Position numbers and translations under genes: made by a program
Shown here: piece after piece, positions 18,001 to 46,292 of the stretch
Position numbering within the stretch: the stretch's first letter is position 1
How the letters are laid out: each line of letters starts with the position of its first letter
The notes under the pieces: model-generated
Told to the model about the DNA's origin: nothing
The model's input: the letters and a program-made list of their open reading frames with translations, nothing else
The model's database searches: none
Source: Botryllus schlosseri
Lineage: Eukaryota
Assembly: GCA_051294905.1 (NCBI GenBank)
Contig: CM119379.1
Span: 11,036,001 to 11,100,000, forward strand
Length of the DNA: 64,000 bases
Direction: 5' to 3'

Positions 18001-21000
18001 ACTAACGGCGAGTGGGACCAATGACAAGGCCAGGCTGCAATCGATTCTGAAGGAGATCACCGGCATTCTGGGTGCTACACGTAATCCGGCCCAGTCATCC
18101 AAGGTATGCATGCCGTCATAATGAGCTTACGGTCGGTAAATCTTTCGGTCGGGAGTAGGGTTTGGCAATATCAAGTGAGCGAGTGACTCGATTTCGATTC
18201 GAGCATGTGACTTTGAGTCTGCTCGAGTAGTCAAGGATTCATTATTAGGATGATTTTTTTTTTGCCTAAAATACAGAAGATTTTTAAGCTGAAAAATCAA
18301 AATTTTTTGACATTTTTTACCACAAAAAACTTAATTTTCACAAAATTCTGACCTTGTGTAAGTAAATGAGGTGCTTTCGCACATAATGTTAGAATTTTAC
18401 TACTGATCTTCATTTCTACTATTTCGCTTCTGCGCAAGCTATGGTCATTCATTTGGCGAATGTTGACGAAGAAGTTAATGGTCACTGTCAACGTGACACC
18501 AAATTTACTATGAATCTACTATACTAGCTTCTTGTAGGTAAAGAACTTAACACACAGTTGAATAGAATATTGATATTGAAATGAGCCAAGAAGATGTTCG
18601 TCTACCATCTATCATGTAGCGTTGGGACCGCAGGAAATCCCGGGACTGGTCCCGATGAAATCCCGGGATTTGTGAACAGCATCTACCAAGGCTTATGTAG
18701 CGCCATATCTCTTATTTTGGTAATAAAGCAGTGTCACAAACTCGGCTGATTGTCTAGAACAGTGGCCTCAAACACGCCGCCTGCCAGAACTGTTTTTGCG
18801 GCCCACGTCGGCGTTTTGACTTTTCAAGCATTCGACAATAATAAATTCGAAAATTTCAGATTTCTGATTTGAGAACTTGAAATTTCATTCTGAAACCACT
18901 CCAAAAACCTGAATCGCTATCACACATCAAACGTCCACTAGCTGCTAAATTATAATGCGACAGCTTTTACAATGACACGATGCATTTGTCGTCTCGCATG
19001 GTTTCTAACTGTCTATATAACTCCTTATGTCACCAAATTATGCCAAGCACAACAATATTTTTAAATGATATTGAAAAATATGACTTTTTCGTGGCAACCG
19101 TGAATATTACAATGGTGTATTACATTTTCACAATGTGTATGGAATGCCAATCTGCAAGGTCCGACAAAAAAAGGCGTACTGGGAAATACATATTATACCC
19201 CTATTTGATGCTGCTGCCAGCCGCGTCATCAAAAACTACGAAATTGGCCCGCGATAAAATTGGAGTTTGGAACCCCTGATACAATCGATGATACTCTTGA
19301 TGCTCTTATGTTTTGCGTCAATTCAATATCACAAGGACTAAATTTTATTTGTGTAACCTGTATGTCTATTTTACTATTTTTCTAATCCCGGGGAATCGCA
19401 GGATTGAGGAGCGAAAATCCCGGGAAATCCCGATCCCTGGATTTCAAATTTGATTCCGAAGTCCCAACCCTACTATCAGGGCTGTGGAGTTGGTAAATTT
19501 TACCAACGACTCCAACTCCACACATTTTCAATGGACCGACTTCGACTCCTGAGTCTTTAAACGTACCGACTCCGACTCCAACCCCGGCTCCAAGAGTATT
19601 ACCAATTTACTTCAAAAACTATATGCCACAGTGACGGTTAAATGACTATCATATAATCATCAAACATATGCAAACATATGATTAACGATGGCTTACAAAA
19701 TTGATTGATTCATTCATTCATTCTGCTCACTATACTTCAGAATGCTGTTACGGTCCGGATTGTCATATGCCCGAAGCCGTATTTTTGCAATCACAGAATT
19801 TTGTAATTGCAATGGCACAGCCTTATGATGCGGGAGTGACACACATCTACTTACTTCCAATATTCTAATCTTCACGAAATGCATTCACCCTTATCCACTG
19901 AAATGCACACATTGTGTGCCCTTATAATCATGACTTCATAGTAATGGTAGACTTAGGGTAGGATCCAAATTCAAGCGTAGTCTAGTTGATGCAAGTTTCC
20001 GCCTTTACGCATAGGAATAGTTCTCTCCTCTTTCTAGTATTTCGGAGAACTCCTGGTTCATCGAAAGATGTATCAAGTAGCCCGGAAAATGTTCGAAAAG
20101 TCGCTAGCGCTGTATGGCGACAGCACGCAAAAGTCTTCATCACTGCTGCGTGCACTACAATTATCGTACCATCTGTGGACCGATACCCAGAACAAGAGCA
20201 AGGATGCAGATGACGCGCTGAGGGCAAAGCTGAGCGAAATGCTGAAACTCGACCAGAATTCATCGGTATTTGAACTCTGGCAAGGCCTGGTTTATAGATC
20301 GGATGGCAATCATAGGTAAAATTTGAGATACTCGTGATGGATACATGGAGAGAGAAAGTCTCTTCTTGCCTCAACCCTGCTAGGGCACTGGTTGGGTTTG
20401 CCAGCTGCTGGGTGTTCAGAAGACAGCTAACGGGAATTTTACCCATACCTTTGGTTTCGAGACGGACATATCACATTGATTCAGCTGAATTAGCAGATTT
20501 CAGTGTGATATCGTTTGAACTGTTGATTTTACATCAAATGGGTGTGTTTATTGAACCAGGAAGTTTTGCATACGGGCCAGCGTAATGGTAGAATGTGAGG
20601 CTTGTTGGTTGGTAGGTCGTAGGTTCGACCCTGCCATGGATAAGACCAGAGACTTGCTCGTAAAACAGCCATCCAGGATAGTGTGCTGGTGCTGACTTGA
20701 TAACCTTGCACTTCCATTGTAAAACCTGTATATTATAGCCATTTCTTAGTGCGCTAACTGCATTTTTGCCTAACGCTCTCGTTTTGTGAATTCTCTCATT
20801 CATGTTTCATGTATATTTGATAATTGGCAACTGTGCCTCAAGATATATATGCATGGATAAATACTAGTCACTGACACATTGTGTATAAGCAATACTAGAA
20901 ACGCTCTTTACGTTTAGAAAAGCAAAGTCCTTTTTCAACCGGATCGTGAACAGCACGAATGTGACATCCGATCGCTGTAGAAATATCGCTGTTTGGTATT

Positions 21001-28356: not shown

Positions 28357-30499
28357 CCCAGGTAGCAAGCCTACTTGGGAACCACAAGGTATCCAGATAG
28401 GATGAAATGTGGTAAGTGGGGAAACCAACCAGGACCCTACCTTTATGGCCCCATATTACCGAGGTATTTTATGGGGTGCCATGTGGGTAACCCACGAAGC
28501 TGGAAGGGAAGCGAATAATATTTAGGGCTGGGCATAATGATTCGAGTACTCGAATCTGAATCGAGTAATAATTTTAATGATTCGAGTCGAGTAGTAAAAT
28601 ACGATTTTTTCGAGTACCGAAATTACACGCTCCTCGCCACTGAAAGTTATTTATCGACGAGAATTATAGTTTCGATACTATTTTCCACTGTGCAAGCCTT
28701 TAAACCTTAATTGACCGTAACGTAGCATGCGACACATATAGTACAAAGCTACAAACGTTACAGGAATTAACACATTTCTGAAGTCCTGACCAGCCCACAA
28801 CATTGTCACTAAGTGCAATGAAATCGGTAAGGTCGAAAAAATACCAAAGTATGTTTAATGTGATGGATAACAGGTATTATATTCTTTCGGGTGGCATGAA
28901 AGGTACATATTTGAACTTTGACATCTTCCATTCTATTATGACGTCATAATGAATGATGCTCGAATACTCGACTCGACTCGAAGCATAATACGTGATTCAG
29001 AATCGAATCACTCAGGTACTCGATTTTGCCCAGCCCTAATAATATTACGACCCCGGTCCTTGTAGCAGTGGCAGTGTATGTGGACCAAGAATTCGACGTA
29101 GACATGTGCTAAGGAGGTGTTAGATAAACCCTACACGTCATATATTTAACATTGTATACTATACAGTACATACCTGCTACCACTACCCACTCAAACCAAT
29201 ATATACGGCAATTTGAGTATATAATAACCTTTACTGTGGGTGAGTGCTGTCATCATTGTTTAAGTGTAATCGTTGAGTTATATTTTCAACTGAACAAGAC
29301 ACACACAATGTACAATGCGATAAGACACAAAGCGATGTAATGAACAGATAGGAGGATGCCGACCGACGCGCAGTTGTCGTCTTTTAGACTGACACTCGGT
29401 TTAGAGTGCCCGCCGTCACAGTTACTCTCGATGTTGATCATTTTCGAGGTCACGGCCCTTGCTAGCGCTTTCCATAAATTGTGAGTGCTTTCTTTCGTCG
29501 AGTCATCCTCGGGCCTCACGGCGGAAGAAGAGGAGCCCGGACAAATCTCCGACGGGAATCGACCGGGCCGCCCGATTCTTAGGCGCTTATCGTCACCACT
29601 ACCCGAATTCAATTCATATGGAGAAAGCAGTCTGGTGATGGAATTCAATTTGGAAATGTCCCAGCGACCATAATCGCAAATGAATAAATCGGAAACCGAT
29701 TATAATATGACTTTACAATACAGATCAACAAACCTTGCTGTAGGAAAATATAAAAGAAGCATCGATTGGGGAAAACTACTCGGTCGCATGTGGGAACCGT
29801 ATGGAAAATCGACACATCTTGATTGACAAAAATCACAAGTTCAAATTATTTGATCACAGAAATTTTACGAGTAAAATTAATCCTGAGTTAAAAATAGTAG
29901 ATACAGATAAGGGATAAAGGTAATGGGACCTACGCTAAAAAATTATATCGCAAGCTGTGAGGAATTGAGTACTCTAGCAAAGGAACTTTAAGTTCACTTC
30001 AGTGTGACAAACGGTCAATTTTAAACAGTTCAAATAACATTGACGAAGTAAAGCATGGTAGGGGTTTTAAAGTTCGATGTTCGAGGAACCAACAGGGATC
30101 GCATAATAGCTAGAAAACTTTACTACATACGGAACCACCTTATTATTCGATTAGATAAACCAAATAACATTGATGGAAAATAAGGTTGGTTCCTGTGTGG
30201 GTGATATATGGGAAATCTAAGCCCCTCTATATGTGGATTTCTCATGTTCCAAGATGATTTGATTACAAAAACTCAACAGGTAAAACTCCCCCTAGTTCAA
30301 ATTGATAGGTACAACGAGAAGATAGACTTCTTGCAATCTACCTGGGATTGGTATGGTATAACCAATAACCATGCATCTTTATGGATGGAAATCCCGCTTG
30401 GTTTCGATGTGGGTCACATGTTACTAACCCATTCCGTTTTTCCACCCCTCCTAACCACTTAAATTCCACTTGGATACCATGTGGGCGTGCTAGCTGGGT
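28357..30499. mobile_element. TIR element of undetermined superfamily inserted in 27899-31169
   Basis: Termini CCCAGGTAGCA / TGCTAGCTGGG; absent from the sister copy at ~46950, where the flanks are contiguous. Confidence 0.65.
28523..29038. mobile_element. 516-bp hAT MITE (TCGAGT-motif family)
   Basis: TIR TAGGGCTGGGCA / TGCCCAGCCCTA; perfect TSD ATAATATT; inverted sister copy at 45778-46292. Confidence 0.92.
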
Positions 30500-36073: not shown

Positions 36074-37347
36074 ATGCTGAGTAGTGACTGAGTACAGCAT
36101 TAGTGAGAAGGCTGACTTAGCAGACCTGCTAAAGAGCTACCTGTAGTTATGATGACAAATGAGGCCATTAGTCGGGAATTTCCGTCGTGATATTTCGATA
36201 GTGAAGCATTTTAAAATGTGACGTCGGGATTCTAGACCAGCAATTAAAGAAAGACTTTATACAATGCGATAATATGCTATTATTGATAGATTTGAAGATT
36301 TAATATTTCAAGGTACAGTTTCAATGCGTCACAGTAGCAATTCGATTTTGAATGACTTTCGCGGCCCGTACAAAAAGTGGCAGCGGGCCGCATATAATAG
36401 GTGAAATATTTTGGGGGGTAAGTAAAGCGGTACGCGTACGGCGGTAGGCGTAACTTCCCCTCTGGTGTTAATCGGGAGAATTCTCATGTTCGTCATCAGC
36501 AACCTCAAAAATCCTGAAAACATTCTTAGATGTTCTCCAAAAGATTTTTTTTCGTTTTGCTGTCTCTTGTCTTCATTTATCCTTCTCCATCACAACGAAA
36601 TCAGCGAGAGAGCGCTGCATTATTTATGACATCACACTCTTTTCCCTTGGTGATTTGGCTGACTCTTACACGACCTCCTTTGCACTTTGGGTTCAAAACA
36701 GTTCCGAATGCATGCAATATGTCCTATGCTATGATATCTTGCAAAACGAGAAATCCAGTTTGCAATGCTACAGATGGGCCACAAAAACCATATCGGAGAG
36801 AAAACGTGAAAGTTATCTAAATGTGAAATTAGACCAAATTAAATAATCTATTAAAAATAATGACAAATAATTGCTTATTTTACTCAGTCAAATGACGACT
36901 ATTATTGAGAGAGAGAGAGAGAAGAAAATAACATTAATGCATTAAATAATACCAAGTAACTTAACGGTGTAGGACAGGGTGTAATCGAAATGACTCTGAA
37001 TATAGGATCAACTAGTCTGATCACACCTTGCATCCAACAATTACAGGTATTCTTTATAAATTTGGTTGCAGTTGGTTGGGATTATTTAATTCAGCATATA
37101 GCTGAAATAAATAATAACAATAACATGGGAAAACTGGGGACAAGTGGGACAAGTGCAGTCAGTAATGGGAGATTAGGTGTCTTAATAATTCTTTTTTAAA
37201 TGAGTGATATGGACGGTCTCGTATAGATGTAGGTATAGTAGGCTATTCCAACTCAGGACCGGAAGATTCGATTGATTTTTTGTGAGGTTACTGGTGGGGG
37301 GCAGTAGATGGATGTTGCCCCTGGAAGAATAAGAAAGTCTGGTATAG

Positions 37348-37608
37348 TGAGAGAGAGAGGGTGAGAGATATGATATTCTTTTTCGCCTGCGCCATCGAGA
37401 TGCTTTGACGACGGAGTTGCGATACGGCCGTGAGGTCATCTAGTCGGCGCCCCCGTTTTTTTCTCTTCCATGCTATTAGTGATTGCTGAGCGCCTAGCAG
37501 GATAGCTGCGGATACCAAGTTCCGAGTCTTTGGTATGATCCGGCCGGGGATCGAACCCACGACCTGCCGATCGAGAAGCCTGACTCATAACCATTACACT
37601 ATCTCGCT
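37348..37608 (-). mobile_element. tRNA-derived SINE family 1, full length with (TC)n tail
   Basis: Reverse complement of the 41123-41390 copy over ~260 bp. Confidence 0.9.
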
Positions 37609-38847: not shown

Positions 38848-41800
38848 ATGGCGATGCCCACGTGTCTTGCCGTATTTCTTTCTGTTGGACTTGCATCTGC
38901 AGGTGAATTTTATACGTTTTATTTTACGAACATGTTGCAATATCAAGCTTTCTCATTACGTATTTCTACAAACCAATGCTAACCGATATAGCTTCGTCAA
39001 ATTATCTGGTTAACTATGATTTATGCTTAGCTGTGTCCATTTCGTTTTCCAAAACCTCAAATAAAGTGCGTCTCATATAACATGTTTCTTCAAATCATTT
39101 GGATAAAGTTGAATTTATCAATGTATGCAATATCATCACGCTTGTAAAATATGAGACCACAAGTCATGGGATAGTAAACTTAAGCTCCTTGAATATTATT
39201 TTCATAAATTTCGAAATCAGTCGCATTGACGCATATCTCATTTTCACGAAGTCGAACAATCATCACGTCGCTTTTCAAACACCCGCCCGCCATTGAAAAA
39301 TTTAATCAGCCCTATGGAAATTCCTTCGTGAGTAGGCCTATATATGTCGTCCAGTGGCAACCTGTTATCTTTCACAAATTGTTATAACGGGATTTGCATT
39401 ATTGCTTATGATTATTTTCATTCTCAGGCGTCACAGAAGATGAGTCTGTTGGGACCGAAGAGGCCGACTGTCAGCCGCCGTTTTGGCACGGCAAATTGGG
39501 CGATAATTGGCCGCTTGCTGGTATCCTGGCTAAATCGAGGCCATCATTCCGACTCTCCGTCGGGAATACAATCAACGGAACATATTACAAAGCTAGAAAG
39601 CTGCATGGGGGTATAGAATCACAATTATACCTAATATCTTTTTTGAAAAGTCCCAGAAAAGTCTGATCTTCTGAAATATGTTTGCTGCATAGGCTACATA
39701 TTCCAAAATGGGAGTAGCGCGGGGGTCACCAACCTTTTCGAAACCAAGAGCTGCTTCTTGGGTAGGCCTACTGATTAATGCGACGGGCTACGAGCTACTC
39801 CCACCGTTTATCCGTGCTCAGTTGCGTTTATTCACTTAGACATGCAGAGCACTGGGCAGGGATCCCTCCCCTTACCAAGAACATAAAACTCTCACTCACC
39901 GGGACTCACACCAGCGTCTCCGGGCCCCGTTGCGTTACGTTATAATAATTATCTAGTCCCGTGTGGGCAAAGACGAGCAATGCCCGATCGAAAACTGCAT
40001 TCGAATGCGTCTTTGGGCCGACTGACCAATGTTTAACTGCTGCTCATATGAAACCCTTCTGCTTCAACCTTCAAATATCTCATTTGAATATTTGCCACTA
40101 CGGCCGCGGGCGTATTAATTGGTACTCGCGGGTTACCGGTAACCAATGGACATCGAGTTGGTGACCCTTGGAGTAGCGTAACGAACTTCGATTATATATA
40201 ACAATTCAAGTAGGCTATTAAGCTGCATTTTCACATGTAAGCACCAATTGTGTAATGTTGTTGTTGTTGTTGTTGTAACTGACCAAGAAAATGAATCTTC
40301 AGTACAATCACGAGATTACGACGCGAGCATATCCTTTTTATTACTGGCCTCAACTACTATGCAAGCAGCATCCGATACCCGATCACAATTCTTTCTGACA
40401 TCGTGACATATTTCAATAGTGACATTACTGGCCCTCCGTCCCAAGAAGAAATCATCGAAGAGAATACACGGGTTCATACTAAGTCAGACGACGGACACCG
40501 AGACTTGCGGATTGGGTGTTTTCAAGATAAGAAATGTCAAAAAGGCCGCGAATGCCACTGTCAGAGCGGACTGCGGGGATGTCATTTTGGATGGTGGTAC
40601 TGACGTCATAAAGGTGCGCGCTATTAAATGGAAGGCACCCAAATGTGGATGTGTCACGCTCAGGTGGGTGCTTAACTCATTATCTTCGTCAGAAGGTATG
40701 CGTAATTAATGGCACGGGAACCCATTTCGGATATGCGAGGATTCGACTTTAACAATGTCTAGCTCAGTGGTTCTCAACCTTTTTGGCTCCGCCGACCCCT
40801 TTTGGATCGTCACAGACTCCCGCGGACCCCCTCAAATTTTCGTTCACAGTTAGCTCAATTATCGTGAAACCGTCAACCGTCTGTTGCAAATAGTAAATAG
40901 TGATAAACAGCCATAAAATGACTTTTCTCGAAAATAACAGCACGCTATGTGTTGGAATTGGGTATATTTATATTATTTCGAAGGGAATTTTCCAGCTGTA
41001 TTTATTGCCTTGAAACTATGCGTCTTCGAAGTGATATGAATGAGTGCCGAAAATCCATTTCCACAAAAATATATTGGTGGCGAATGTAATATTAACGCGT
41101 AACGCTTCCGACGACAGCTTTTGGCGAGATAGTGTAATGGTTATGCGTCCGGCTTCTCGAGCGGTAGGTCGTGGGTTCGATCCCCGGCCGGGTCATACCA
41201 AAGACTTGAAAAATGGTATCCGCAGCTATCCTGCTAGGCGCTCAGCAATCACGGATAGCATGGAGGAGAAAAAAACGGGGGCGCAGACTAGATGACCTCA
41301 TGGGGCCGTATCGCAACTCCGTCGCCAAAGCATCTCGATGGTGCAGGCGAGAAAGAATATCATATCTCTCTCTCTCTCTCTCTCTCTCTCTTTGGTGTGA
41401 CTTTGAACATATCACGTCCAGCCAGTATTCATTTCTATCTAGCATCTCATAATCTCATATTGAAGTTCTTTAGTAGTCAGGACAGGCGAAAATGGATTTC
41501 GTGGCGCAGTCTTAATTCTTTCACTGGGACAGATTCGAAAAAAAATTCAGGAATTTCTATTTCAAACGACTGTTTACTAATCTGCTGAGACTGACTACTA
41601 CAAATCCGAAATGTTCTCCCGTTTGACCTTGCTATCTCCAACATTTAAGTTTTCCACAACCCCCGAAAAAATATCTCTATACAGCCATGTTTGCATCAGC
41701 AGGCTATTGGCAATTTGACCCCCTGAAAATGCTGCACGGACCCCCGGTTGAGAACCACTGGTCTAGCTAAAACCAATCGAGCCTGCTATGAGTAAAAGCT

Positions 41801-43515
41801 TATTACCATAGTGTCGTATATGGTGTGGACACAAGCAAATCTCACGGCTCAGTGAAATTGGTCTACTTATTTTGATACTCCAGAAAACAAGAAGTGTATC
41901 ATTGATTAATTAGAGCCAGTCGCCTAAAAAAAATTTCACAAGTCGATCGGAACCAACGACCACAGACTACAATGCAGCCGTTGCTAACGGTATCTTGGCA
42001 TTCCATATTGTCAAACACCAGCAATCATTCCTCTCCAACGATTGCACATCGCAATTGTCCAAAAAATATTCTCCGACTCCCACATCGCAAAAAAGTTTGC
42101 TTGGCCAGGACCAAGACTACAAGCATTGATACTGGAGTTCTTGCTCCATACGCCCCCCTCCCCCCCCCCAAAAAAACGATTTTGTCTGAACTTGGTGTAG
42201 AGCCTTTTTCCATCATGGTTGACGCCTATAATCGCAACCAGGTGAAAGAGTTTGGTGTATCACCCTATGGGTGGCCCAAGACCAACTTTTTTCGACGAAA
42301 AGTATGGGAAATGATATGACACGGCTTATATGAGTACAAAGCATGTACAAAAACGCTTTTTAATGCCAATCTAATTTTTCGACTGTCCTTATTTTTGGGT
42401 CCATGTCGATGGCAACCCTGCATATAGGACACTATACTATTACTAATAGTTAAACGACCTAATATAGTTTTGTTTGGCGATGCTGGGTTGAAATGAAAAA
42501 TTTTCGTAATGATCTTATGGAATTAATTTATATTATATCGTATCTGATAAAAGTAAAACTTCCCTGCCAAGGTTCGCATACCTTGGATTGTGAAGTAACT
42601 TACTCATGTAAAACGCTCGAATTGCATACGAAATAGTACATTTCTTTTACATAACTTGTTTGATATATGCACGGGTAATACGCAATACAAATGAACACTC
42701 ACACACCTTCAAACCTTGGCCTTTTATTACGTCATGAACATTCAACCTTTTCGGCTGAAGGTCCACATCTGGTGCAGTGGCGTAGCAGCATATGCTGTCG
42801 CCCCTGGCATTGCTATGATATGCATCTTGAACACATGTGAGCTGTAAGTAATATATCGATATTACCAGTCTAGCAGTGGAGGATGATTTTTCCAAGACTC
42901 CCTGTTGGGACGTCACGAAAATTGCCAATATTCTTTACCTCTAATGGCCGATACCGATATATCTTTCAAAGTGTGATATTGACTCGATAATATCGACGAA
43001 CCAATAATAATGACCATAATTATTACTATTTTCGGGCGGATTCTCGTGCAGATGACCTAAATTAATTCCATAGGCTATGGCTTCGGAGGCTTTAATTGCA
43101 TTACTTGCTGCGGCCAAAAAATCAAGTGTCGTCACGTGGTTACGAAAATATTTATTTTCAGCAATAAATATATATGGTTCAAGTAGATCAATAGTGTAAA
43201 AGTGGAAGAAGTTTCAGCACATCAAAAACTTGGAAACTGTTGACTGCTCCTTCGGCTATTGTACATGGTCAACAAGGATTCAATATGACATCCAACAACG
43301 TTCTCCCTGTGCAACCCAGTCGCAAAGCAATGGCTGAACATCGAAATAATCATTGTGGCTTAACTATGTTTCCCGATTTATTCAACAGAGTCGAAATCAA
43401 GTCAGCTGACAACATTATCTACAGCGATGATCCCGACAGTGAAGAAAGTGACGAATATCGAATTCTTACCAAGACACTGTGCCCTCCAGCGGTGGATTTG
43501 CCAACACCAGCATAG
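38848..43515 (+). CDS. Secreted stand-alone Reeler-domain protein (F-spondin N-terminal type), 202 aa, 4 exons
   Basis: Exons 38848-38902, 39428-39610, 40420-40663, 43389-43515. Signal-like MAMPTCLAVFLSVGLASA; SFRLSV..YY..VTL..IHGFIL..WKAPKCGCVTLR..NIIYSDD..LTKTLC parallels F-spondin FSLRV..FY..VTL..FRGFTL..WIAP..GCVILK..RIIYFQD..LTKKLC. Confidence 0.85.
39720..40170. mobile_element. hAT MITE in Reeler intron 2
   Basis: Termini CGGGGGTCACCAAC / GTTGGTGACCCTTG; perfect TSD GAGTAGCG at 39712-39719 and 40171-40178. Confidence 0.88.
40765..41760. mobile_element. Charlie-like MITE carrying a SINE insertion, in Reeler intron 3
   Basis: TIR CAGTGGTTCTCAACC / GGTTGAGAACCACTG; perfect TSD GTCTAGCT. 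Confidence 0.92.
41123..41390 (+). mobile_element. tRNA-derived SINE family 1, full length with (TC)n tail
   Basis: A box TAGTGTAATGG, B box GGTTCGATCCC, central GGTCATACCAAAGACTTGAAAAATGGTATC..CCTGCTAGGCGCTCAGCA, (TC)n tail. Confidence 0.9.
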
Positions 43516-44586
43516 ATGCTGTTTGGATGCAACCGACCAAGAGTGGATTCAGAAGCACCCGCTAAGAAAAAAATGAAATTATTGATCTAGGCCTACCGTA
43601 CATATGAGATGAAATCAACGATAATAATTGTTAATTTTGAGTGCATGCCTGATTTTGTGTGACGTCTTGATACTGATTTCATGTCTGCAAATACACGCAG
43701 GCCTGCCAGACCACTTTCCTCGTCTGAGTGTTGTGGTATGGGAAGGTCAATCCAGCTTGCTTCTACTTCGTTGTAACATTCATAGCCATGGAATTATCGG
43801 TAGAGATGGGCGCGATGATTCGAGTACTTGATCCAAATCCATTGCTGTGTTTTTGTTCTGTTAGTGGTGTCCATGGTGTTTAGACTATATACCATGATCA
43901 TTTTAGACCAGGCCGGTATTCATTATTTAGCTAGTTTACTGCTGCATGCTTTACAAAAGCATCAGATACATGAACCTGCAAACAGAAACATGTTGCATCA
44001 CCACGTGTTTCAGGGCATGTATGAATTAGCTAAGGTGTAGCCAACCAGTAATAGTACTTTTACCTGTCTTATGAAACACAAATACAAAAGGAAGTCATGC
44101 CGTACGTGATTTTATTGTATCTCTACCGCAGTATCTTTCAAGAGATCTCCAGGTTCCATTCCACAACAATGGGTTACGTGGCTTACGAGTGATTTCTATG
44201 GTGAATGTAGTGAGTGTAGTGACTACAGCTACTGCGACTGCTGTGCGCCTTGATCATCCAAAACTTGATAAAACCTAATATAGAATGCGACACTCACATT
44301 GTATGCAGAAGCGGGTGATATACTCCAATAATAATCCATAACCTGTATATAATTCCGCTTTTGTTGTTTAGTAACAATTAAATATGGCGTAAATGTATAA
44401 AATCTATGGTGGTAAATTTGGCGAATCATGGCTCATGCAGTGGCTGCTCGTGATGCCCACAAGAGGTCGCAAATTAGTTAACATGCGCTTTCTGTTTCGT
44501 CATCCGCGACAGTGAAATGTAGTCGTATTCGCGAGCGGTTTCTTCTCCTTGTTTAAGTCTGCGTACGGGCCAAAGCAATCGAAAGA

Positions 44587-44949
44587 ATGTCTGAAGTTAG
44601 TGGAACGGTGAAATTCTTCAACGAAGTCAAGGGTTATGGATTTATCACCCCTTGTGACGGTGGACCTGATATATTTGTTCACCACTCAGCCATCGCTGGA
44701 AGCGGATTCAAAACTCTGATAGAAGGCCAAACCGTTTCAGTAGTTCCCGAAAAGGGACAGAAGGGCCTGCAAGCAAAGGTTTGCATCCCGAATTCATTAC
44801 CACGTTGATCACCCACACGATGTCATTGGAAATCACATTCTTTTGATAGTATACTCGTACCGCAGATCTCGTATTCGACTTTTTGTTATCTGTCATATTT
44901 CGTGATACGATTGTTGAAATAGAATGTTCTTTCTGTTCTTTCCCCCTGA
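44587..44949 (+). CDS. Single-domain cold-shock protein of bacterial CspA type; preferred model has 2 exons (44587-44778, 44923-44949), 72 aa
   Basis: RNP1 KGYGFI, RNP2 IFVHHS, then [27 protein letters not shown]. Splicing AAG|GTTTGC...AAATAG|AAT gives [10 protein letters not shown] and restores the conserved AxNV. AATAAA at 45108. The unspliced alternative ends at 44808 ([11 protein letters not shown]). Confidence 0.88.
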
Positions 44950-45107
44950 CGAGTGCGTCAGCCGAAAATATTCGGGTTCATTTCAATATGAATATATTAT
45001 TCAATTGTATATTGAAGTTCTGTTCCTCCAAGAAGCTCTTCCTGTTACGTTTTTTGTGTATTTTTCCAAGTTTTATCTGCTGAATTATCATTGCTTATCT
45101 ATATCTG

Positions 45108-45113
45108 AATAAA
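45108..45113 (+). terminator. Putative polyadenylation signal of the Csp gene
   Basis: AATAAA ~160 nt after the modelled TGA (44947-44949). Confidence 0.5.
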
Positions 45114-45777
45114 TTTACCTTTTTAAACAAACTGGTCTCTCGTAGCTATGATGGGATAATTACTACAAGGTATAAACACATCGAGTCAACCGACCGGTGA
45201 CCTGCATGGTTTTCAGAAAGTTAGTTTGTCATGTAGCAGCTTTAAATCATAGAAACGACCTCCATAGGGTGACTGGAATAAGATCATTCTAAAAGTCAGG
45301 CGGAGTTACTTAATAGGACATTCAACTTTCGACATACGTAGCAAGCCTCCGGTAACGAACATTGTGAGATGGTCAGAGGTCAGGATCTGGTTCAGGGGCC
45401 GCATCGTAGATGAAAGAGTTCATCGATTTTTAACGTAGAATTCGGATGTTGAATTTGCATTGAAAGTGATATTTTAGCAGGATTTCTCCGTTTACAGATG
45501 AAAAAGATTAGCAGAACACCAGCCGGATTTTTCCGGACTCTGCCTTCCGGATTGCCAGCCGGCGCCGGCTGAATTAGGATTCCAACGAAAAATCCGACCA
45601 TTTCTGGAGATAGGACGAGTGGGAACAATTGTGTACGTACCAGTAACTCCATGTAATATCGAGTATTTGCTGGACTATTTTGTAGTGAAATTATCGGACA
45701 AAATGGGCGCGTCAAGGTGAGATAGGTTATCTTAATCCACCCGTGATGCATGTGAAATGTTACGTCATACAAACATG

Positions 45778-46292
45778 TAGGGCTGGGCAAAATCGAGTAC
45801 CTGAGTGATTCGATTCTGAATCACGTAATATGCTTCGAGTCGAGTCGAGTAATCGAGTATCACTCATTATGACGTCACAACAGGATGTACTATGTCGAAG
45901 TCCAAATATGAACCTTTTATGCCACCACAAAGAACGTAATGCCTGTTATCCATCACATTAAAGATACTTTGGTATTTTTTCGACCATACCGATTTCATTG
46001 CACTTCTTAACAATTTTGTTGGATGATAATGACTTCGGAAATGCGTTATTTCCAGTAACATTCGTAGCTTTAAACTGTGCCTGGTATGCTCAAACACGGC
46101 CAATCAAGGTTTCACGGCTTCCTCAGTGGAAAATAGTATCAAAACTATAATTCTCGTCAGTAAATTAACTTTCAGTTGCGAGGACCTTATAATTTCAGTA
46201 CTCGAAAACATCGTCTTTTACTACTCGACTCGAATCATTAAAATTACTACTCGATTCAGATTCGAGTACCCGAATCATTTTGCCCAGCCCTA
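45778..46292. mobile_element. 515-bp hAT MITE, inverted sister of 28523-29038
   Basis: TIR TAGGGCTGGGCA; perfect TSD CAAACATG at 45770-45777 and 46293-46300. Confidence 0.92.

Follow-up and report, generated by a model that had tools for sequence, protein, structure and literature searches.

The window, that is, the whole stretch of 64,000 nt of Botryllus schlosseri DNA that was analyzed, carries an expressed gene for a bacterial-type cold-shock protein (Csp). Its coding sequence (44587–44808, + strand) is composed of 73 codons, starting with ATG, plus a TGA stop codon, and encodes a single cold-shock domain (CSD) with intact RNP1 and RNP2 motifs. We consider it probable that this expressed, uninterrupted gene belongs to an ascidian Csp family derived from one old horizontal csp transfer, and that the window copy is a dispersed paralogue. 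The initial annotation of this DNA had described a bacterial-type Csp gene that had gained a spliceosomal intron in an animal genome. This observation was partly confirmed: bacterial origin and residence in the host genome are supported, and the gain of an intron is refuted. Genes of this kind were reported earlier (Wei et al. 2020, PMC7540406), and the novelty lies in an additional, dispersed copy in the genome of another ascidian.

A minimal cold-shock domain of the CspA type

The 73-aa protein encoded in the window matches the Pfam CSD profile PF00313 with 74.5 bits (cut-off 27; E = 6e-21), residues 5–64 being aligned with positions 2–61 of the 66-position profile, so that one domain accounts for essentially the whole protein. 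RNP1 is represented by KGYGFI (residues 15–20) and RNP2 by IFVHH (residues 29–33). In an alignment of 45 sequences the window Csp retains 14 of 14 invariant columns, and its unusual residues include C23 and P27.

The best match in the PDB is E. coli CspC (E = 7e-21), whose residues 1–62 align with residues 1–62 of the query without indels, with 37 of the 62 positions identical (~60%). The next matches are ~25 further bacterial Csp chains, with E-values from 1e-18 to 1e-12. Animal CSDs gave E-values of 2e-8 (CARHSP1, aligned over residues 5–51 alone), 3e-8 (YB-1) and about 1e-6 (LIN28). In the case of YB-1 (chain residues 8–72 on query residues 3–63) and LIN28B (10–75 on 5–63), the alignments contain an insert of 4–7 residues. 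The protein had initially been described as a single minimal CSD of the Csp type, and the length of 73 aa, the PF00313 E-value and the indel-free alignment with CspC confirm this. The reported lack of Y-box and LIN28 inserts, zinc knuckles and an N-terminal extension was also borne out, as the YB-1 and LIN28 alignments need extra loop residues and the protein is so short.

The best non-ascidian matches, identified in a collection of 5.8 billion proteins, were 68-aa Csps of uncultured Gammaproteobacteria with 70–75% identity. The best NCBIfam models were those of CspE, CspC and CspA, and all of them scored under their equivalog cut-offs (for CspE, 92.1 bits against 120, over the first 64 residues). 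As judged from its sequence, the window Csp belongs to the CspA family without being orthologous to any of the named E. coli paralogues. The structure predicted by AlphaFold2 (mean pLDDT 83) contains five strands, at residues 4–12, 17–22, 29–32, 49–56 and 61–68, and low confidence is confined to the last five residues. The coding sequence has a GC content of 0.46 and a GC3 of 0.41, the mean GC content of the window being 0.41. No second Csp copy was found within the 64-kb window.

The coding sequence is not interrupted by an intron

The initial annotation had placed a 144-nt GT-AG intron at 44779–44922 (+), followed by a second exon at 44923–44949 (+) with the nine-codon frame NVLSVLSP*. The GT at 44779–80, the AG at 44921–22 and the NVLSVLSP* frame are indeed present in the sequence, as is an AATAAA hexamer (45108–45113, +), a candidate poly(A) signal; the splicing itself did not hold up, and there is little RNA coverage around the hexamer. 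The proposed intron is unspliced: its first 30 nt contain the last nine codons and the stop (VCIPNSLPR*), and the remainder is 3′ UTR. The proposed second exon likewise is 3′ UTR, located beside or inside a repeated element.

A 471-nt RNA contig from run X3 (depth 62) is colinear with positions 44514–44984, with 0 mismatches and 0 gaps. The depth of this run was 0 over 44140–44421, and the contig therefore represents transcript and not DNA carry-over. Among the raw reads of run X23, 47–58 carried window-specific letters at positions 44590, 44754 and 44778, and the mean depth in a bin inside the proposed intron (44798–44891) was 29 + 26 = 55. This depth equals that of the reference allele over the coding sequence, and retention is therefore essentially complete. 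The 44778>44923 joint was not among the RNA joints listed (15 of 56). The donor, GTTTGC, is weak, and a pyrimidine tract is lacking before the AG. In addition, the DNA word depth was 1e5–2e5 at positions 44901 and 44922, and other genomic copies skip 44916–44997, which places the supposed acceptor and second exon in repeat-derived sequence.

It had been argued that the unspliced ORF loses the last beta strand, and this was found to be incorrect. The LQAKVCIP stretch of the window protein aligns gap-free with bacterial LQAxxVxx in the 45-sequence alignment, and the AlphaFold2 model predicts the read-through tail to form strand 5 (residues 61–68). The likeness of the alternative QAKNV to CspA extends to two or three residues only. 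The C-terminus of all five ascidian-type proteins reads QA-x-x-C-x-(P/V), with up to five more residues after it, one of the tails being TECTVLP. The read-through tail is kept in four other ascidian homologues, two of them in transcript contigs. In contig L001 (run SRR32906209), ATT is found at the position of the window's donor GT; we infer that L001 is a transcript contig, because the sibling run SRR32906210 gives a contig with an uninterrupted acid-lipase ORF. Contig L082, which also has the read-through tail, is a spliced transcript, since it contains an uninterrupted 475-codon animal acid-lipase ORF. Intron gain after the transfer is thus refuted by the colinear RNA, the ATT at the donor position in L001 and the tail common to all ascidian copies, and the protein is encoded by a plain 73-aa ORF.

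Transcription of the window gene and of a diverged second copy

The Csp transcript has a 5′ UTR of 73 nt (44514–44586, +): the X3 RNA contig starts at 44514, and the X23 depth rises from ~1 to ~280 per direction at bin 44516. The Csp ATG has an A at position −3. A minimal ATG-TAG uORF (44517–44522, +) lies three bases past the apparent transcript start. The 3′ UTR (44809–45079, +) extends to the point at which RNA depth drops to ~5 per direction (bin 45080–45173); no clear 3′ ends were reported for the Csp transcript, and repeat-derived reads swamp 44957–45079. A poly(A) remnant after the AATAAA, which is a hallmark of retroposition, is not visible in the sequence. Because RNA depth is near zero between the upstream host transcript and the Csp transcript, Csp constitutes its own transcription unit starting at ~44514. 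Of the words sampled from 44300–45300, about half were present in 14 RNA runs belonging to four studies.

Most of the Csp reads in X23 do not originate from the window gene. About 95% of the RNA reads matching the coding sequence (44583–44790) represent a diverged second copy with ~8% nucleotide differences. This copy has a 5′ UTR of its own, marked by a loose end at 44582, and its tail, VCIPDPQPH, ends with TGA at the same codon position (loose end at 44790). Positions that distinguish the two copies include 44590, 44599, 44607 and 44627–28, and both UTRs differ as well. At position 44590 the window copy contributes ~56 of ~1,500 X23 reads (~4%) and is ~20 times below its diverged sister copy. 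The excess of diverged Csp reads fits the presence of paralogues in the same animal. Given the low expression of the window copy, together with its long terminal branch (0.51) and odd amino-acid composition, constraint on this copy may possibly have been relaxed after duplication.

Residence in the host chromosome

In DNA contigs of run X28, the word depth was about 11–18 across the Csp gene and its flanks, compared with 18.7 on the neighboring host exon; the contigs spanning the promoter-CDS and CDS-tail boundaries had depths of 17.9 and 12.8. Organism B, a close relative (1–3% divergence), provided abutting contigs over 43200–45777, including one of 775 nt (43987–44761), and its contigs bridge 43987–44761 and 44762–44945.

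The last exon and 3′ UTR of a strongly expressed host gene are located upstream (43389–43760, +), after the acceptor ttattcaacag (AG at 43387–88), which is followed by A. Only the first 188 nt of a 632-nt RNA contig map here, and the exon is therefore spliced to an exon elsewhere. It ends ~750 nt before Csp on the same strand. The C-terminus encoded by this host gene is acidic and serine-rich, and several SNPs and one-base deletions were seen in its exon in an RNA run, which is consistent with a highly polymorphic species.

Host repeats flank and enter the Csp transcript. The 3′ UTR includes a very high-copy repeat (44957–45040), with a DNA depth of 1e5–1e6 in organisms A and B, loose ends at 44957 and a second copy at 18526–18603. 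Further downstream lies a high-copy MITE-like repeat (45778–46071), of which a copy with 88% identity is found at 28745–29038. Elsewhere in the window, 37182–37560 and 41044–41588 are opposite-orientation copies of one repeat, by appearance a SINE or other interspersed element; their translations share AAILLGAQQS..., RKKRGRRLDDL and a CT-rich LSLSLS run.

The initial annotation had placed the gene near an intron-bearing host gene and among host repeats, which agrees with the spliced and expressed upstream exon and with the flanking high-copy repeats. Its argument against contamination also stands, given the host-level DNA depth, the surrounding host repeats, the transcription and a homologue in the chromosome-scale assembly of Styela clava. 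The data support integration of the window Csp in the host chromosome at host copy depth.

Ascidian relatives and linkage with an acid lipase

An intact 71-codon Csp ORF was identified in S. clava (GCA_964204865.2, OZ123514.1; L083:8472–8687, +). It is located 1.3 kb upstream, on the same strand, of an intron-bearing gene encoding a lysosomal-acid-lipase-like protein (L083:10001–14151), and the window Csp is ~60% identical to its product. This ORF is missing from the called genes of the assembly. Botryllus and Styela both belong to the Styelidae. Three further proteins, P0001, P0121 and P0122, were found by profile search and share the peculiarities of the window Csp. The exact 73-aa ORF was absent from a collection of 15 billion proteins, in which the cluster of P0001 has one member.

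The acid lipase encoded by L082 is 79% identical to the lysosomal-acid-lipase-like protein of S. clava, with those of Clavelina, Phallusia and Ciona next at 44–46%. This identity, together with the Csp-lipase pair of S. clava, indicates that the relatives of the window Csp come from ascidians. The Csp-lipase order of S. clava is also found in L082 and, according to its gene list, in the 6-kb contig of P0121. On L082 the Csp ORF (136–348) is followed 775 nt downstream, on the same strand, by the complete spliced acid-lipase ORF (1123–2550). The presence of both genes on one RNA-derived contig could be due to a polycistronic transcript of the tunicate style, to read-through or to UTRs that overlap. 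The lipase transcript of another species (L086) begins only 37 nt ahead of its ATG and is separate from Csp. No acid lipase was found in the 64-kb window by tblastn, and the window Csp is therefore a dispersed copy that has moved.

A Csp of an Endozoicomonadaceae MAG (P0119) has an 11-residue stretch identical to residues 6–16 of the window protein, including the Phe in place of Trp. P0119 was placed outside the ascidian clade in the tree described below. A study of torpor in Botrylloides reported a strongly induced ‘Endozoicomonas’ cold-shock gene (PMC10264598), and in that case reads of host and symbiont Csp genes may have been cross-mapped.

Phylogeny and origin

A maximum likelihood tree was constructed with IQ-TREE (LG+C20+F+G4, PMSF) from 177 sequences and 68 alignment columns. 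It was built without a eukaryotic CSD outgroup, and the distinction from animal CSDs is drawn from the E-values and indels of the PDB search. The window Csp, P0001, P0121, P0122 and the S. clava ORF form one clade (UFboot 100, SH-aLRT 95) nested in bacterial Csps, and the bacterial protein P0071 is its sister (98/84). In the MAG of origin, the gene for P0071 is flanked by hisG and a SIS-domain gene, a his-operon setting that is usual for bacteria. The window Csp has a terminal branch of 0.51 in this tree and an odd amino-acid make-up. Derived states common to the ascidian clade are the replacement of W by F in VKFF (strand 1) and of V by C in strand 5. The horizontal acquisition of a bacterial-type minimal Csp put forward by the initial annotation agrees with the nesting inside bacterial Csps in this 68-column tree without a eukaryotic CSD outgroup, and the presence of such a gene in an ascidian genome through horizontal transfer is supported.

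Pairwise comparisons of the ascidian copies by the Nei-Gojobori method gave saturated pS values of 0.70–0.91 and pN values of 0.18–0.23. The ascidian Csp copies are old and constrained, that is, they are under purifying selection. A scan of GTDB genomes identified Csps with 50–66% identity in many Gammaproteobacteria, Alphaproteobacteria and Actinomycetota. These matches are spread over many taxa and point to no single donor species; the best sister, P0071, comes from a MAG. Proteins of Ciona, Phallusia and Clavelina, whose proteomes are in the database, were not among the 120 best listed matches of either Csp search. One well-supported clade, a lipase linkage in three sources and saturated synonymous sites point to an older, shared acquisition kept by selection. 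This suggests that the family arose once, with the lipase linkage conserved since then, and that the transfer is older and wider than published.

Alternative explanations

The bacterial affinity of the gene would also be expected if the Csp segment lay outside the animal genome, as a result of bacterial contamination or a chimeric assembly. The closest non-ascidian relatives are bacterial, with up to 75% identity, and Endozoicomonas-type symbionts with similar Csps inhabit ascidians (P0119; PMC10264598). The probability of this explanation is nevertheless practically negligible, given a DNA word depth of 13–18 across the gene that matches the adjoining host sequence, independent contigs of a sister taxon that bridge 43987–44761 and 44762–44945, host repeats inside the 3′ UTR, a GC3 at host level, the position of the S. 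clava Csp, next to an acid-lipase gene with introns in a chromosome assembly, and the fact that the ascidian copies constitute their own diverged clade. Vertical descent, in which a minimal CSD protein of ancestral eukaryotes would have survived in these ascidians alone, conflicts with the 70–75% identity and gap-free colinearity with gammaproteobacterial proteins, with scores of animal CSDs that are poorer by at least 13 orders of magnitude and alignments that require loop inserts, with the nesting of the clade within bacterial sequences, next to a supported bacterial sister, and with the lack of Ciona, Phallusia and Clavelina proteins among the 120 best listed matches of either Csp search. 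Small CSD proteins are known in some eukaryotes and the tree was built without a eukaryotic CSD outgroup; vertical descent is, even so, very improbable, and horizontal transfer is the preferred origin.

The product of the gene would differ if a 144-nt spliceosomal intron had been gained after the transfer, as the mRNA would then encode a 72-aa protein ending in KNVLSVLSP. The presence of GT and AG at the two borders, in phase 0, a spliced tail (QAKNV) like the AGNV of CspA and the statement of Wei et al. that, among the three Csp genes of S. clava, two ‘had introns’ (PMC7540406) are compatible with such a structure. It is extremely improbable in view of an RNA contig colinear over 44514–44984 with 0 mismatches, a depth in the segment (~55) equal to that of the reference allele over the coding sequence, a weak donor (GTTTGC) without a pyrimidine tract at the other end, the ATT at the donor position in L001, the x-C-x-P tail kept in five proteins, an acceptor and second exon within repeat-derived sequence, and the absence of 44778>44923 among the joints listed (15 of 56), with which rare splicing would be compatible. 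The uninterrupted window copy might instead be a transcribed but decaying duplicate, with the highly expressed paralogue doing the job. The paralogue letters in ~95% of the X23 reads matching the coding sequence, the long terminal branch (0.51), the deviant amino-acid composition and unusual residues such as C23 and P27 point in this direction, and the intact ORF with all 14 invariant columns, the stop at the codon position of the paralogue, steady transcription in many RNA runs from several studies and the confident fold model point away from it. We regard decay as unlikely and favor an intact, dispersed paralogue.

Proposed history and function

One old transfer of a bacterial csp gene would have given rise to the ascidian Csp family, the donor gene being Csp-like, with its closest relatives today probably among uncultured marine Proteobacteria. 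The window copy would be a dispersed paralogue, away from the acid-lipase gene that accompanies the Csp genes of S. clava and two other ascidian copies. Transcription from ~44514 produces a short, unspliced mRNA whose 3′ UTR has apparently absorbed a host repeat. Binding of single-stranded RNA and DNA and RNA-chaperone action are established for the CspA family. The predicted five-stranded OB barrel of the window protein may bind single-stranded RNA or DNA via the aromatic/basic face of RNP1 and RNP2, as in bacterial Csps, and its RNA-chaperone action may keep RNA unfolded at low temperature, countering cold-stabilized secondary structure. By analogy with these proteins, we infer that the window Csp binds nucleic acids and plays a part in cold tolerance.

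We lean slightly toward a more detailed scenario, in which one acquisition took place at or before the base of styelid (perhaps stolidobranch) ascidians, with insertion just upstream of the acid lipase; the gene would then have been kept by purifying selection and have given rise to dispersed paralogues whose expression levels differ greatly, and the protein may have been adjusted to the eukaryotic cell by the lineage-wide replacement of Val with Cys in strand 5 and of Trp with Phe in strand 1. If this is true, ‘symbiont’ cold-shock transcripts in studies of botryllid torpor could be partly host-encoded.

Functional gene transfers from bacteria to animals are few, and the ascidian Csp paralogues constitute a tractable set for studying the role of a bacterial RNA chaperone within a chordate. 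The corrected gene model is a plain 73-aa ORF, and the gain of an intron should not be propagated. The published account treats the Csp genes of S. clava as an adaptation at the level of this one invasive species (PMC7540406); with the family present in a second ascidian genome, the evolutionary reading shifts toward an older, shared acquisition.

Comparison with known systems

The animal proteins CARHSP1/CSDC2, YBX1-3 and LIN28 share the OB-fold CSD with the window Csp, and its GFITP-DGG-DIF stretch resembles CARHSP1. However, the E-values of CARHSP1, YB-1 and LIN28 (2e-8, 3e-8 and 1e-6) contrast with 7e-21 for CspC, CARHSP1 was aligned over residues 5–51 only, and the window Csp is devoid of the N-terminal extension, zinc knuckles, C-terminal tail and loop insert of this group.

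With the bacterial CspA family (CspC/CspE/CspA), the window protein has in common its length class, gap-free colinearity, RNP1 and RNP2, and the predicted five-stranded barrel, at 60% identity to CspC and up to 75% identity to Csps of marine Gammaproteobacteria. It differs in being encoded in an animal chromosome by a eukaryotic-style transcript with a 73-nt 5′ UTR and a host repeat in the 3′ UTR, in scoring under the NCBIfam equivalog cut-offs (92 versus 120 bits for CspE), in the replacement of the Trp of VKWF by Phe and of the Val of strand 5 by Cys, and in a C-terminal extension of five residues that is predicted to be disordered.

The classic bacterial-to-tunicate transfer is that of cellulose synthase (CesA), which occurs throughout the tunicates and has gained introns. 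The Csp case resembles it in that a bacterial gene was fixed in tunicate genomes and is expressed by the host. In contrast to CesA, members of the Csp family were observed in this analysis only in S. clava and in ascidian-type contigs close to it, and the coding sequence is uninterrupted. The ascidian CesA is also cited as a bacterial-to-tunicate transfer in the work on S. clava (PMC7540406).

The closest known system is that of Wei et al. (2020, Mol Ecol Resour; PMC7540406), who described three horizontally transferred Csp-like genes on one contig of S. clava. Their top BLAST matches were all bacterial, a neighbor-joining tree placed them with bacteria, their read coverage equaled that of the surroundings, two of the three ‘had introns’, and the genes were up-regulated at 12 and 2°C in qPCR (PMC7540406). 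Beyond this paper, our literature search gave no publication linking horizontal gene transfer in ascidians or tunicates with cold-shock genes. The window copy differs in its location in B. schlosseri, its identity of only ~60% to the S. clava copy identified here and its lack of lipase linkage, a linkage that was observed in the present analysis and does not belong to the published description; cold induction is known for the S. clava genes only (PMC7540406). Both are bacterial-type single CSDs of ~70 aa encoded in the genome of a styelid ascidian, and the window Csp shares with the S. clava copy identified here a clade, the W-to-F and V-to-C replacements and the extended tail.
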